Assembly (NCBI GenBank): GCA_047495785.1
Contig: JBLDXI010000004.1
Coordinates: 1,550,001-1,614,000, forward strand
From: Lepidodermella squamata
Taxonomy: Eukaryota > Animalia > Gastrotricha
Direction of reading: 5' to 3'
DNA: 64,000 bases
Shown here: positions 34,482 through 61,703 of the stretch, one piece after another
Numbering within the stretch: the stretch's first letter is position 1
Layout: every line of letters begins with the position of its first letter
Position numbers and translations under genes: made by a program
Notes under the pieces: generated by a model
What the model was told of the DNA's origin: nothing
Databases searched by the model: none
The model's input: only the letters and a program-made list of their open reading frames with translations

Positions 34482-35421
34482 TAATACATAATAGACATTG
34501 CCAAACTCGAGCCATACTTCTCCTTGACAAACCTTCTACAATCCCCAACTAACAAGTTTCTTGCTTCAGATTTGCGATTCATATCGGTTATCTTGTTTGT
34601 TGTCAATTTGTCATCTTCTTTGCTTGAATCTTCCTCCTGTTTCCTGCTCATAGGTTTCTTCCTCCTCACACTCTTTTTTTTCAAATGCTACTTCTTCGTA
34701 CGGTTTTTATAAGTTTGATAAGTGATAAGAGTGATAAGTTGCATACATAGTTGTGAACGATTATATTAATGGAAAGCAACATTCACTTTGGTTATTCATC
34801 TTAGGCCGGATTTTGCGGAGTCAAAGTCCAACTACGTGTTGCTGTGATGGTCGATATGATAGCATCATTGGGATCAACGGGGCTTGGCAGCACGCGATTC
34901 TATCAATTGATTAACATAGTGTGAAAAAAATCACACCCACCAACCCGACCAGCCCCACTATCGCGACCGACCCAGCAACAAGTAGTTGGACTTTGACACT
35001 GCATATCCAGACTAAGATGTTGCTACTGCCTGCGACAGCTCAACTCAATATTGCAAACTTGTCATACGTATTTCTCAATCCGTTAGTTGCAGGCATTATT
35101 TTATTTTTCGCGCTTTCTTATTTTTTCGTTCTTTGCTTGGTCTGTACCTAATGTCACGTTTTTATCTGCTCTATAGCACGTTTAAAAACAGATAAGAGGC
35201 TTTCGTTGCAAACTTCTAGAGAAAACAATTCGTTCTGGGTCCTTATCGACCCTCATTCTCACACTTTTCGACTCCCCTATGCAGCGAATTAACTCAATAT
35301 TATCTAAAAAAAATTGTTTCTTACAACTATCTGGTTTTCTATTTTTGTTGTAGGGTTTCGGACTAGTTAAGGTTTCTATTTCTGCGCTTTCAAAAATGCC
35401 GTCTGCTATCTGTTCATAAAA

Positions 35422-55270: not shown

Positions 55271-56076
55271 GCGCAATACCAAACAGCTCGCGTCCGTCAG
55301 TCATCCTGAACTCGTCGTCTCAATCTTTTTTAATAGGTGAAGGCATCAAAGCGGACGGCCAGGCTGTGTACAATTCAAGCAAAATCGATCAATTCACCTG
55401 TATGACAATCCAATACAATGGTGGGATATCTATGAAATAATGTTCGCTTGTGGTCGAGGAATCTCTCCGTCTAACGTATTGCCTGAAACATTCCGACTGA
55501 TGCCCCAAATCGAAAATCTAGCTATCCATATGCCAATGAGAAAGGTTGGGGACAAGGTATTCCAGAAATACGGATCTGACGACTACCGACAAGCTACGCA
55601 TAACGGAACAGCCGTTGCGAATGACTTATTCGGGCCACATGGTTTTGGATCGCTTTCAATCGCAAACGAAGGCGATCGAATCTACAAGGTTGAAAACTTG
55701 CGAGCCAATTGGTCAATCACAATTGCCTTCTACTACAAAGGACCTTGCTCGAACACCAGCGCAATCCTCGCCCTGAATGGCGAAGGGTTCATTTATTGCA
55801 AGCCCAAAAGCGGGGTGTTATACCAAAGTTCGACAGGTGTGATTTCCAGTTCTGTTTCGCATCCTAGCGGGGATTGGATATTCTACATTATAGGGCGACT
55901 TTGCAGTCACGTGACTAAGAGCAAAGTCCACCTATTTTTTTCTGGTCTGATCGGCCGGTCGGTCGGTCGGGCGGTCGAGCGGTCGCACAGTTGCTCACTC
56001 TTCACGATTTCCATAACGAATTATTGTCAAGCGATCGCTTATCGTTTTCAATCTATAAATAAGTCTTAATTCTGAA

Positions 56077-56869
56077 ATGGCTTCTAATCAGTTAACAGCT
56101 AAGGAGCTTGCAAAGCAGCAGAAGAAGGCTGCCGATAAAGCGAAAGAGAAGGCAGAAAAAGAAGCTCAGCGCCAGCTTCAACGCAAAGATCATCTGGACG
56201 CTCAACGCAACGAAAACGCCACAGAACAAGGGCAAGAAGATGAAGCTGAAAGTTCAGACGATGCGAGTTCATCAAGTCTTCAGAACAACAGTCATGGTAC
56301 TGGCAACTCAAAGCGGTCGGGAGCTAAAAGTCGGCGAAAGAACAATTCTTTCGATGATACCTTCTCGACAGAACATGTTTTGGATTTTTTGAGCATCAGC
56401 ACTAGCACGGTTATTCCGCCACTTTCGGATTCAGCCTTCGTCCCGAGGTCGTGGGAGCATCTTAGCTCCGTCGCGAAGAGTTACAAAAACTGTAAGGGCT
56501 CATTTATTTATTATTTTGTTGCCATGATCTATTGAACGTCCCTATATAGCTTTGTCCGCGAGATTCCGGTCGGAATGGACGTACGATGAGCGTAATCGGC
56601 TTCGCCATATATTCGCCTACGCAGCGATGCTTGGGAAAATTCTCAGTTTTCCAGACAGAGCGGTAACGCACTGGATGGCAAAAACACCAGCTGACAAGGA
56701 GCTGGACAAGGAGCTGGGGCGGACTGTGGGTGGGATCGCGCGTCAAATTAAGAACATTCACCTGCTTATTCGGGTCGGGAAATTTGAGTTCACTTGGGAG
56801 CCAGGAGACAAAACCGAGCATTTGTACGACTCAGACAAGGATGGCTATCATGTGATTGCTAGGAAATAA
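56077..56869 (+). CDS. Transposon accessory protein (244 aa, 2 exons): K/E-rich N-terminus and Myb/SANT-like C-terminal motif
   Basis: Exons 56077-56491 and 56550-56869 join through a 58-nt phase-1 GT-AG intron. WTYDERNRL...ELGRTVGGIARQIKNI resembles a Myb-like HTH. AATAAA downstream. Confidence 0.7.
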
Positions 56870-57024
56870 ATGAATGTGTTGAAGCGCTGATTCCTTCCAA
56901 TTGTGATGACGAAAAAGCAATGTGTAAAAGTTGAAATGTTGAAATTATCAATCAATAAAATGTATGCATCTTTTCAATAGCAAAGCATTTCATTTATTTA
57001 TGTTTATATGATATTCAAATTTTC

Positions 57025-58958
57025 TTACATATTTTCAATCTTCAAAATTTGAACAGATTTCGAGTATTTGTTCGATGTTTCACAATCCATGGACCTGCGT
57101 CTTTTCTTGTTGATGACCTCGATGCTCTCAGTGCAAAGCTTGCCAATGTTTATTCCTCGTGCCAGCAGTTCATAAACGTGGCTCCCGAGCAGGTGCGCAT
57201 AAGAAGTCCGACGACCAACGCAGCGATGCCAAATTTTTTCAAAGCAGCCTGCCATTACTTGGGTCGCAGGCGTTATTTCGTTATTTCTTATGTCTTTGAA
57301 AACGAGATATGACGTGAGGCATAATTTCCGAAGGTCTTTGAAATTAGCGAGCAGCAGTTTACGACGCTTATCCGGAGATGGGATCGCGCCACTCTGAGTT
57401 TGACGGACCTGGCTTTCATTGGTTTTGAAGGTCATAGATGGAAGGAAGAACGACTCCGTCAACGATTTCCCAATCATTCGCTTCGCAAGTTTGCAGAAAG
57501 CCTAAGAAGGAAGCACGAAAGTCAGAATGATCTAAGATGATATTTTACGCACATCACTCACCTTCGAAACGCCGTAATGATTCGAGTTTTCACGAAGACG
57601 TTGATTAATCCGCTTTTCCTCGATGTTGTAGTTTCAACAGAGAATTTCGAAGATTTGGAATGACTTTTCAAAAACGCAACCAAAGCTTTTAGGGGAGCTT
57701 TGAATCCATTGCCTTTTAGCAATCTAATAATCTGCAAGGAATAACATTAGATTTAGATTGGTATCATATTGAGATATTTTTATACCTTTGATATCAGCTG
57801 TCGGGCTATGTTCACCTTCATATGGAAAAAATCCGGGATAATGATGAATTTCCTGGGCCCAAGGCGAATCATGGGGCTGAAATCTTTCGACCACCCAAGC
57901 GTTTCTTTCTTTGAATCAGAATACTTGTCAAACCTGCGCTTCCTGGGTATTTTCTTCATGTCATTAACATTCATTTCGCAAATGAAACATCGATATTCTG
58001 CACCTTGATGACCGCAACCCAGCAGCTTTGCAGTTGCTGGGTAGTCGCAGCACAGAAGTAATCGAAAATTGTATTGAACGTTTTCAATTTTCAGCCCATT
58101 TTTCACGACACTTGTCAGTTCGCTGATTGTTGGCTCCAGGAACTTCCTGAACATCTCGCTGCTCTCAGTACCTTGATACATCGATAATTGGTACTCGCCT
58201 GAGACACTAATTTTGTTTTTAGAATCAGAAGCGCAAATGAACGAATTGATCATCCCTTCGGACATGCTTGTTCTCGCTGCCATACCATCGAGCTGATTTT
58301 TGAAGATACTGAGTAATTCGAGTTTCAATTTAAAAAACATCATACTTGGAATCTGATGTCATTCAATACATCCTGTTTTATTTCGCCGCGGCGTACCATA
58401 GCACCAATAATCGAATTTACCGAACGAGAAGCGCCCAGCCCGTCGTATACAGAAGTAATCGGATGCAGAGAACCAAGCTGTTTTCGCACTGAGTAAAATA
58501 GCTTTTTACCCACTGATTGATAGCCAAGGCCATTTTTCAATGCCAGCAGATTTTTAGCATTAATTCCATTCTTCAAACCAATGCCAATCAACCTAAGAGA
58601 TGAATAAATTTGCTCAGCGGAATCTCGGAGCGTGACTGGAATATTACTGTTTAGCTTTTTCCTCAGCTTGCTCTCTTTTTGGACGAACTTCACCAGCAGA
58701 AGGCCATTCTGCCTCAACCGTTCCCAGATCTTCGTATTCAACCGTAAGCTTCGCCTTTTTGATAACCGCGCCGTCCATGATGTCGGAGTATGGCGCTGTG
58801 TGGGTCATCAATTGTAAAACTGCTGTTTGTGCAACGCTAGCTCGGTGCTGTCCAGATCGACAAGCAACGGAACTTATAGGGCCTCTGATGCGAGACAAAC
58901 TCAGCCTGATAGATTCTGAAATACCCCCGCCGGGTGCAGAACAGTAATTTGCTGGCAT
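57025..58958 (-). CDS. RAG1/Transib-like DDE transposase (intron-containing; at least one 1-nt indel; 5' end unresolved)
   Basis: Introns 58293-58345, 57732-57785 and 57502-57561. Motifs IRFQ|LDGM (D1), LCCDYP..LLG....YRCFIC (D2 + CxxC), PDFFH, SYAHLLGSHV (HxxxxH) and IGKLCTESIEVINKKRRR (E) parallel RAG1 CDGM, GYDEK..CTLC, IDALH, NYFHKTLAHV and IGAWASEGNESGNKLFRR. Confidence 0.85.
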
Positions 58959-61703
58959 AAGGGGATTTTAATAAAATTGACGTCTTCAACTACAATGACG
59001 AATAATGCTCTCTTATTGCCTCTTTCTCGATTATTAATTCACTCCTTATAGTGATTTCGCAGCATATAATTCTTGTTATAGTTCTTTTTTTCTTGCAGCA
59101 GATTACGCTGAAGTCATAATTGTCAATGAAAAATAAATGGTGATATGGCGAAGGAAAAAAATCGTTTTTTTTACGGCAGCGACCGCGCGACCGCCCCACC
59201 ACCCGACCGACCGACAGGCCGATCAGACCAGAAAAAATAGGTGGACTTTGCTCTTAGTCACGTGACTGCAAAGTCGCCCTATAATGTATGCGTTCGTTTT
59301 CCGGCCGAGTCACATCGAGACCTACTACCAATTACCAGCAGCAGTTGATGTTATCAGCACAGGACCTACTATTAAGAAAGAGTTCAAGACTTCGAATGGA
59401 GGCTATATTTCATTGGAAGCTTTCGGATGGAAGAACTACCCAAGTCGAACTTCAGATGCCCTCGCCTGTGTAACTCTTCATAGCACTGCGCTGACGATGG
59501 ATGAACTTCGAATGCTGACGTACACGTGCGGGAAGAGACCGCCGAGGTCCGAATTCGTACCAGATACTTTCGACGAGTTGCCTCAGCTTGGAAAACTTGT
59601 ATACCACATGCCTTTCGTTTCGAAATCGCCATACTCAGTTTTTGACAAATTTGGGTCAACTTTGTGGTACGGTGAGGCTAAGCAGCGAAATTCGAGTACT
59701 TCGCAAAGTGGCCCGTTTCAAAACGGCGTTCTCACGGCGAACGGCCTTGGTCCGCAGGTTTCAGGCGTCGAAAGCCAGGATTCCTTCACATTCGCCTTTT
59801 TGTACAAAGGACTGTGCGTACATACAGAGGGGATCGTCTCTATACAATAAATTTTCAGATTACCTGTAAGTCGGATAGTATGATTCTGAAAGCCGGCGAA
59901 TTGTCCTCGGAGCCAATGAAATACAACGTAACTGATGTGTGGATCTTTTACGCATTCACTTATTCTAGCAACCCATCGGCCAAAGAATACATCTTAACGG
60001 GTTATAAATGGTTGATTTCTTCATCAGAGCCGAGTAAAGAATTCGAGACCAAAGACATGAAGATAAACATCACTGCTAACCCAATTTTTGAAGATCATCA
60101 AATCGGAGATGATGTAACAAATGGTGCGACCGTTCGCTATCCTGAATCAAACAAAATATCTTGTGTCAGCTATTATTCCGTAGCTTTGAGTCTCGATGAC
60201 ATGTCGAAATTCTTCAAAGCTTGCGGGAAGAAGGAAGGACGACCGAAAAATCTGCCTGATTTCTTCGATTTCCTGCCGCAGAGACGTAGCCTGGTTTTCT
60301 ATGCTCCATTCACTACGCAAAGTGGGCTGTCGCTTTTCGATAAATTTGGCCAGGTAATGAATTCTACAGACCCTGGAACTGTGAAAATCGTCCCGAGAGA
60401 TCTTGAGCAACGAACCTGAGCCGAGTTACCAAAATCGCAAAGATTCGAACTGGCAATCGAAAATTGGTACGACGATATCAGCCCAGAGTACCCTACCTCG
60501 CCTAGATCGTAATGGTATCTCACCGCCGGACAAGCCATTCGACACGATCGAAAATGTCCTGAGAAGATGTGACCACTTTGAAGCCGCACGATACGCTCCT
60601 CCTAAAATCAAGGCGAATGAACCGAACTACGTGAACATTACTTTCTATGTACCTGGTTTGAACGAGCTATCGATCGGGGATGATACGATCTCAGTTAGTG
60701 GAGTAGTTCTTTTATTTTGGTCCGTGTCAACATGCCCGAAAAATTCGACGGACCCGATCGCAACGAGACCTAAAGAGCAAATCTACGTAGGTAACCCCAA
60801 TCTTATGTGGCTTCCCCAGCTTCGGTTCATCAACAGTGCCCAGTCGAATGTCTACATGAAGAACGTTGCTGTAGGCGATGATTTCCTAGTCACAATGGAT
60901 GGAGTTGGGGCTAAGGAGAGCCCTAATAATACCTACAATTTCTATTGGACTCGGGAGGGTCTATTCAAAGCTGACTGCACGTTGGTGATGAAGGATTTCC
61001 CATTCGATAAACAAACCTGCGTCTTTGTTTTCGGCCTACAACGATCGAATCTTCAGGTTTCTTTTGTGGACCCACCAACATTTCTTTGGGACATCGATGC
61101 TGTTGCCAATTCTGAGTAGTTAGTGACTGATTTTGGTGGCCAAATTTCATGGGCTTACTTCAATGGCTACAACGTATCAATTGTTGTTTATGAAGTAACT
61201 TTGAAACGATACCCAACTTACTACATCAACAATGTGTACCTACCCACTGCGATTCTGGGCAGTTTGGACCTTGCAGCTTTTCTGACGACCCCGGCTATGC
61301 CAGAGCGATCTGCTTTTACGGTGACTATCCTGCTGGCGATGGCTGTTAGCCAGACTCAGATCATAAGCCAGGCTCCGAATACGGATAGCACCATTTTGAG
61401 CACGTACATCCAATGGATGGCTTGGTTCTCGGCGGGAGTGACAGTTTACCACCTGTTCTCCCTATGGCTAGCCTGTTCCTGTTTCGTGAAGGGTAAGTGG
61501 GAAATGAAAATGTTCTTCAACGGACGAATGAGCTTGGTTCGACTTATCGATATACTCGCTTTTCTTGCTGCTGTGGTTTTCTTCGCTTATGCCAACTACA
61601 TTCTTCTTAAAAACTAGTTTAATCCCCATCTCATTTAAATTATTTTTTTTAATTTTAATTTTACATTAAATTATCTTTACTTTTTTTAATACGTCAGACG
61701 TCA

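Follow-up and report, generated by a model that had tools for sequence, protein, structure and literature searches.

A two-gene transposon, probably of the CMCT clade, in the gastrotrich Lepidodermella squamata

The CMCT clade of DNA transposons (CACTA/EnSpm, Mirage, Chapaev and Transib) is characterized by a C(2)C and an H(3-4)H motif in the transposase, by ends that are mostly 5′-CA..TG-3′, and by target-site duplications of 2–5 bp (Kojima 2025, PMC12730594); this published definition of the clade is the one used throughout. Among the elements placed there, ESTA of Puccinia makes TA duplications and was recognized through its HHpred similarity to RAG1 (PMC12730594), while CNEST of Cryptococcus is a mobile CMC (CACTA/EnSpm, Mirage and Chapaev) element that makes TA duplications and groups with unclassified animal transposases (10.1101/2025.05.19.654958). 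Enzymes of the RAG1 fold are studied to learn how transposase and second subunit came to act together. We have analyzed a stretch of 64 000 nt (the window, in whose numbering all positions are given) of contig JBLDXI010000004.1 of Lepidodermella squamata, which contains a bounded mobile element of 3401 bp at 55886–59286. This is probably a young two-gene cut-and-paste DNA transposon of the CMCT clade, lying nearest to its CMC side, that has inserted into the exon of a host gene.

The limits of the element are given by its ends and by the empty target site. A repeat search finds a perfect 57-nt inverted repeat that includes the flanking TA (55884–55940 against 59232–59288), beyond which about 60 nt more match at 88%. 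The outermost TA is palindromic on both sides, so that the inverted repeat alone cannot tell the end of the element from a duplication. A paralogous locus on contig C64 (L052, 88% identical) is an exact empty site with a single TA (...GGATATTC-TA-TGCGTTCG...), and when 55885 is joined to 59289, keeping one TA, the host reading frame becomes continuous again (...GDWIFYAFVFRPSH...). Moreover, a short-read contig of X1, a public run, passes from 55883 to 59287 with 2 nt of overlap and omits 3403 nt in between. This contig carries the C64 variants, and the depth of reads over the element (57) is equal to that over the unique flanks (60); the empty site thus belongs to a paralogous or homoeologous locus, and the reading of the contig as an allele was rejected on the same grounds, together with its 88% match to the locus on C64. 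These observations prove a target-site duplication of TA made by the element, with its copies at 55884–55885 and 59287–59288.

The terminal inverted repeats (TIRs) are 55 nt in length and perfect. The left TIR (55886–55940, plus strand) starts CATTATAGGG and contains a CAAAGTCCAC motif common to the sister families, and the right TIR (59232–59286, minus strand), located by the inverted-repeat search, ends CCCTATAATG. The termini are CATTATAG (CATTATA), where sister families have CATCTTAG or CATTATG. The ends are therefore CAT..ATG, and so of the 5′-CA..TG-3′ form of the CMCT clade, without the CAC start (CACTA in EnSpm) that is expected of CMC termini. An earlier examination of the DNA, made from the sequence alone and referred to below as the sequence-only reading, had described a complete element with long TIRs, and that description holds for the structure of the element but not for its enzyme gene.

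The transposase is encoded on the minus strand in five exons, the model being built from the reading frames and from four introns conserved in the sister family and other relatives. Exon 1 (58648–58958, with the start codon at 58958) and exon 2 (58346–58592) precede the RNase H core, and the frame of each is conserved in the sister family. Exon 3 (57786–58292) contains the core itself, of RNase H plus ZnC2-like type, with the catalytic aspartates in LDGM and CCDYP followed by GCGH, CxxC and PDFFH. After exon 4 (57562–57731), exon 5 (57025–57501) provides TSYAHLLGSH with the HxxxxH motif, TESIE..NK with the catalytic glutamate, and the stop codon. The introns are all GT..AG, of 55, 53, 54 and 60 nt. 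All four intron positions recur in the sister element L033, whose product of 575 amino acids is intact. The order of motifs is thus D (LDGM), D (CCDYP), CxxC, PDFFH, HLLGSH and TESIE..NK. This is the RAG1-core order reported from the sequence alone, and all of the motifs fall in conserved columns in the alignments of relatives. Across families there is little or no variation at D2, D83, C102, C105 and H157 of exon 3 and at H103, H108, E128 and K132 of exon 5; those that bear on membership of the CMCT clade (D83, C102 and C105 of exon 3; H103, H108 and E128 of exon 5) are invariant. The transposase of the lineage is a DDE enzyme of about 570 amino acids, encoded in five exons, whose RNase H core is interrupted by a CxxC/HxxxxH zinc module.

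How does this enzyme relate to those already described? The Pfam model Transposase_21, which represents the CACTA tnp2 family, matches exon 3 weakly in nine of 15 relatives (best E = 3.2e-5). The window copy is matched with E = 0.006 and 16 bits, where the gathering cut-off is 28.6. The Pfam RAG1 model matches none of the 15 over the same core region. When the whole genome was scanned, Transposase_21 picked up two relatives of the element and the RAG1 model had no match. Profile comparison with hhalign aligns exon 3 with Transposase_21-like proteins over 154 columns (98.9% probability, E = 3.6e-17), and no RAG1 or Transib chain of the PDB is retrieved by the profile of either half of the enzyme at E up to 10. 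When 1.84 billion representative proteins were searched exhaustively with HMMER, 19 hits were returned, five of them at E ≤1e-10; these five best matches all come from short metagenome contigs. The distant matches carry DxPA..GHxG..CxxC together with weak Transposase_21 or DUF1258 signals, and DUF1258/DUF1280 signals among them are only faint. On balance the D..D..CxxC half would place the lineage nearer to CMC. The claim of the sequence-only reading that the element fits no named family cleanly is borne out. The element has almost no relatives among the 1.84 billion proteins, and the close ones are all from metagenome contigs.

A model of exon 3 was made with AlphaFold (predicted local distance difference test (pLDDT) 82). 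It matches RAG1 with Z of 5.2–6.2 and amphioxus RAGL (BbRAGL) with Z of 5.7, over 154–162 of its 169 residues and starting from RAG1 residue 599–600; the next unrelated chain has Z of 2.9 and HzTransib 2.2. The top 27 Foldseek matches are all RAG1 or RAGL, with weak E-values. Among the predicted structures of the ESM Atlas, clusters of Transposase_21, DUF1280, Plavaka and RAG1 match equally, with template modelling (TM) scores of 0.60–0.70, and the language-model neighbours are the same mix of Transposase_21, DUF1280, Plavaka and RAG1. The RAG1-type fold of the transposase is real, but it is a trait of the whole clade. Examination of the fold by AlphaFold and Foldseek, as had been proposed, therefore upholds the RAG1-type fold of exon 3 and not its restriction to RAG1. 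The special tie to RAG1 and Transib is not supported: the motifs, ends and duplications are clade-wide (PMC12730594), predicted models of Transposase_21, DUF1280 and Plavaka match the fold equally well, and the D..D..CxxC half gives no match to a RAG1 profile.

The second gene lies on the plus strand, tail to tail with the transposase gene, and encodes a product of 244 amino acids in two exons separated by a 58-nt GT..AG intron. Exon 1 (56077–56491; 138 codons plus 1 nt) encodes a lysine-rich segment, then an acidic and serine-rich segment, and then a basic one. Exon 2 (56550–56869) encodes a conserved C-terminal domain of 105 amino acids and the stop codon. The stop codons of the two genes are 155 bp apart, and the spacer (56870–57024) has AATAAA on the plus strand (56954) and on the minus strand (56993–56998). 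The spliced gene, the convergent arrangement and the polyadenylation signals on both strands are all as previously noted from the sequence. The partner gene is a constant companion of the transposase. A convergent partner is found downstream on the opposite strand in 18 of the 20 loci of this genome whose transposase is 35–67% identical, and the same two-gene arrangement is present on an unrelated metagenome contig (L057, GC 37%). This constant linkage is a strong result on the partner; absence of the second gene from other copies would have told against the sequence-only reading, and in these loci the linkage holds. A more distant lineage in the genome, with transposases 31–37% identical, is without the partner. 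A 7.5-kb element on contig C32 (L048:860-8396), with TIRs of 219 nt and a transposase core that is 37% identical, also lacks it. We found no paper describing such a partner gene. A second, isolated copy of the partner gene is located at C31:404625-404927, about 15 kb from a 4.4-kb copy of the sister family on the same contig (L031). The left terminal base of the latter is A instead of C, and an internal insertion splits its exon 5.

The two halves of the partner protein behave differently. The C-terminal 105 amino acids are 32–55% identical across families, and tblastn with exon 1 against the relatives gave no match, the N-terminal half being not conserved between families. The C-terminal domain is modelled (pLDDT 87) as four to five helices followed by one β-hairpin. 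No Pfam family matches the partner, Foldseek against the PDB gives no significant match, and neither the shape search (TM ≤0.41) nor the feature search of the ESM Atlas finds anything. Exhaustive structural search with the domain gives Z of 3.5–4.4 to homeodomains and to Myb/GARP/trihelix domains, values that are within the background for small helical domains. The earlier description of the partner as Myb-like is thus plausible as a class of fold but is not established. No match to a kelch domain or β-propeller was obtained by Pfam, Foldseek or exhaustive structural search. The likeness to ProtoRAG that had been seen in the layout is therefore limited to the orientation of the genes, the partner being small and helical and quite unlike a kelch-type RAG2.

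Each family has short direct repeats, pointing inward, at 60–105 nt from both ends. Here the word is GGTCG, located 70–105 nt from each end; in the sister family it is GGTCGGAGC, and in another family GGTGACTT. The left cluster (55957–55985, plus strand) has five GGTCG repeats and is a candidate protein-binding array, while the right (59180–59212, minus strand, read as CGACC on the plus strand) has four. Within the 64 kb such clusters are found only at the two ends of the element and inside one other short element, where about 0.03 would be expected per 40 nt. The latter is a miniature inverted-repeat transposable element (MITE) of the sister family, 223 bp in length (34797–35019), with ends CATCTTAGG...CTAAGATG, an inner CAAAGTCC motif, CGACC repeats and a TT duplication.

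About 40 occurrences of the element's 28-nt terminus are found in the genome of 121 Mb, and twelve short elements of 296–507 bp could be paired from them. Those of 493–507 bp are 94–100% alike. MITEs of about 506 bp (L004-L029, e.g. L006:1502-2007) combine the 28-nt terminus with GGTCG arrays and are likewise 94–100% alike and almost fully palindromic; the MITEs keep four GGTCG per end. The interior of these elements contains a string resembling a T-arm, but an origin from tRNA was rejected, as ARAGORN calls none. Identical dinucleotides flank 11 of the 12 MITEs (four with AT, three with GA, two with GT, and one each with CA and AA), and the duplications of five elements from sister autonomous families are AA, TC, AT, TG and GT. 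Since the dinucleotides vary in this way, the enzyme makes 2-bp duplications of any sequence, and TA is merely the target of the window copy. The TA duplication of the sequence-only reading is thus correct for this copy, on the evidence of the empty site L052 and the X1 contig, and does not extend to the family as a specificity. Duplications of 2 bp, indicated alike by the empty site, 11 of 12 MITEs and five sister elements, lie within the 2–5 bp of the CMCT clade. Three sister copies, each with an intact reading frame of 575 amino acids, lie between different flanks and are 99.7% alike. Judged from these sequences, the element is a young copy of a lineage with apparently recent activity.

The window copy is itself broken. 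The coding sequence for its transposase, of 1712 nt, cannot be divided into whole codons, and alignment of the DNA with four relatives traces this to exon 4, which is 170 nt here and 168 nt in the relatives. There is a 3-nt insertion together with the loss of 1 nt near 57586–57594, at CGT-GAAAAC, so that the exon opens in one conserved frame (IIRLLKGNGF...) and closes in another (...NSNHYGVSK), leaving exon 5 out of frame with exon 3. Read without repair, translation stops soon after entry into exon 5, before HxxxxH and the catalytic glutamate. A 3351-nt Logan contig of run X1 matches 55911–59261 without a difference. Because this independent contig is identical, the frameshift is probably a real mutation, and an assembly error was rejected as unlikely. 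Rescue of the frame by alternative splicing was also rejected, as none exists within the conserved exon 4. The 1-nt loss is thus predicted to remove the HxxxxH and E part, so that the full enzyme cannot be made from 55886–59286, and any further movement of this copy would require transposase from another source. Of the spliced transposase originally proposed, the motifs and the GT..AG introns remain, and the continuous reading frame does not.

Taken together, these data make it probable that the element belongs to the CMCT clade, on the CMC side, and the lineage is apparently an undescribed, rare two-gene variant inside that known clade. In the mechanism that we envisage, the transposase would recognize the core of the TIR, where CAAAGTCCAC is common to the families, would cut at the CA..TG ends and would rejoin them to target DNA with a stagger of 2 nt. 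The partner may act as a DNA-binding accessory factor, recognizing the subterminal repeat arrays, and may help in the assembly or nuclear import of the transposase. TNPA of En/Spm and the Myb/MADF protein of PIF/Harbinger elements are helpers of this kind, and TNPA binds the subterminal repeats of En/Spm.

Several observations weigh against this assignment. All Pfam matches of the lineage fall below the curated cut-offs. The profile of exon 5, the C-terminal half, gives no alignment with the Transposase_21-like set, and the only faint match of that exon is to Pfam RAG1 in the HxxxxH..E region, in the window copy alone (E = 0.055). The ends are CAT and not CAC. The spacing of H-x4-H and E-x3-K looks more like RAG1 than like typical CMC proteins, those examined having H-x3-H. 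The spacing, the unalignable C-terminal half and the ends together prevent a clean filing of the lineage. Splicing of both genes is read from GT..AG sites and conservation with relatives rather than from RNA, while DNA binding by the partner, like its part in transposition, is putative, and its fold matches are weak (Z ∼4).

The lineage could instead be a deep and separate branch of the CMCT clade, in neither CMC nor Transib, comparable to the recently named ESTA, Plavaka, Lanisha and CNEST and defined by an obligatory partner. The members of such a branch of RAG1-fold transposases would need a small DNA-binding subunit of their own to read the subterminal GGTCG arrays. We hold this only tentatively and think it unlikely. 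The scarcity of relatives (of 1.84 billion representatives only five proteins match at E ≤1e-10, each from a metagenome contig), the Pfam matches that are all sub-threshold, the mixed signals from the two halves of the enzyme and the CAT rather than CAC ends speak for such a branch, and descriptions of further CMCT lineages that make 2-bp duplications continue to appear (PMC12730594; 10.1101/2025.05.19.654958). On the other side, the N-terminal core strongly matches the Transposase_21-like set, at the E of 3.6e-17 given above. In addition, Mirage elements make 2-bp duplications, and the lineage may simply be Mirage-like.

The helper function that we suggest for the partner within a CMC-side element has its own competitor: the second gene could be cargo carried as a passenger, or a regulator such as a repressor of transposition, rather than a subunit or helper. 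An orphan protein that matches no known domain, and of which the N-terminal half is not conserved, might be expected of such a gene. Against this, the convergent partner has been kept down to about 35% identity of the transposase, and in the contig of another organism. Retention across families and in that contig speaks for a function connected with the element, be it that of a helper or of a regulator. We regard cargo or regulator as a rather doubtful explanation of the gene.

An origin on the Transib/RAG side is improbable. The element would then be a RAG1-like transposase that had shortened its duplication to 2 bp and taken on a non-kelch partner. RAG1 and amphioxus RAGL are indeed the only solved structures that match (Z 5.2–6.2), but no CMC structure has been solved, which makes RAG1 the default best match for any member of the clade, and predicted models of Transposase_21, DUF1280 and Plavaka match as well as RAG1. 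HzTransib, moreover, reaches a Z of only 2.2. The faint match of Pfam RAG1 to exon 5 over HxxxxH..E (E = 0.055) points in the same direction as the H-x4-H, the 20 residues to E and the E-x3-K, which presumably correspond to those of mouse RAG1 (H937/H942/E962). Yet the Pfam RAG1 model has no match in the genome, neither half gives a profile match to a RAG1 or Transib chain at E up to 10, and the N-terminal core is homologous to Transposase_21-like proteins. The ends are CATTATA, not CACWRTG-like heptamers, and the duplication is 2 bp rather than 5 bp. The length of the duplication alone cannot exclude Transib, since elements of that lineage with 3-bp and TA duplications are reported in a 2026 preprint (10.64898/2026.08.26.747230). 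A Tc1/mariner element can be dismissed, as the obligatory TA is replaced by AT, GA, CA, GT, AA, TC and TG in the MITEs and sister elements, and the enzyme has the CxxC/HxxxxH insertion.

The element sits in an exon of a host gene from a multi-copy family. The two halves of the interrupted gene are at 55440–55883 and 59289–59850 and match no Pfam family; the family is tandemly repeated (L052-L056). It forms collinear arrays on contigs C4 and C64 whose exons are about 12% different, and this divergence suggests a large segmental or homoeologous duplication. For annotation of the genome, the element accounts for both the disrupted host exon and the MITE family. Elsewhere in the genome, two loci on contig C42 (C42:58506-58910 and C42:1366028-1366432, with open frames of 578 and 495 amino acids) pass the Pfam cut-off for Transposase_21, and so the genome also holds bona fide CACTA-type transposases that are distinct from the lineage of the element.

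The importance of these elements is that the RAG1 fold is tied to an unrelated small partner gene in at least eight families of one animal genome and on one metagenome contig. The experimental interest is in the lineage and not in the locus of the window, whose copy is broken. The defined repeat arrays at the ends and the recently amplified MITEs could serve as test substrates. Should the partner prove necessary, the lineage would provide a compact natural model of partner-dependent transposition in the CMCT clade, and would be added to its classification. If the lineage were indeed a deep branch with a dedicated subunit, which we doubt, it would be a second independent case, beside RAG1–RAG2, of this fold acquiring an obligatory partner, and one that is experimentally tractable, since intact sister copies and matching MITEs are present in the same genome.

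Comparison with the known systems brings out both likenesses and differences. With PIF/Harbinger the element shares a two-gene logic, in which a transposase is accompanied by a small putative DNA-binding helper. The transposase is nevertheless of another superfamily, having no Pfam match of the DDE_Tnp_4 type, the duplication is 2 bp of any sequence as against 3 bp, and the partner has no demonstrable Myb/SANT or MADF domain. With RAG1, ProtoRAG (BbRAGL) and Transib it shares the RNase H plus ZnC2 fold (Z 5.2–6.2) and the order D, D, CxxC, HxxxxH, E, and with ProtoRAG the convergent two-gene layout. It differs from all three in making a 2-bp and not a 5-bp duplication, in being without the CACWRTG heptamer, in having no profile-level match and in the low score of HzTransib (Z 2.2), and from ProtoRAG in a partner that is small and helical and not a kelch propeller. 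ESTA and CNEST, EnSpm-like elements compared here by their descriptions, are likewise CMCT-clade transposases with 2-bp duplications; unlike the element, they are fungal, are specific for TA where its duplication can be any dinucleotide, have ends starting with CAC, and carry other extra genes (TET/JBP in ESTA).

From the CMC group the element is set apart by ends that are CAT and not CAC(TA), by Pfam scores below the cut-off, by a C-terminal half that cannot be aligned with the typical CMC set, by H-x4-H where the typical CMC proteins that were examined have H-x3-H, and by its partner, an orphan protein of 244 amino acids without similarity to any named family. There are also likenesses. Plant En/Spm also has short subterminal repeats and a second gene (TNPA/TNPD). 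As in CACTA/EnSpm, Mirage and Chapaev, the enzyme is of DDE type with C(2)C and H(3-4)H placed after the second D and before the E, the ends are 5′-CA..TG-3′, and the duplication is within the range of 2–4 bp. The similarity to Transposase_21 is weak and consistent, and the D..D..CxxC half of the enzyme is homologous by profile at 98.9% probability.

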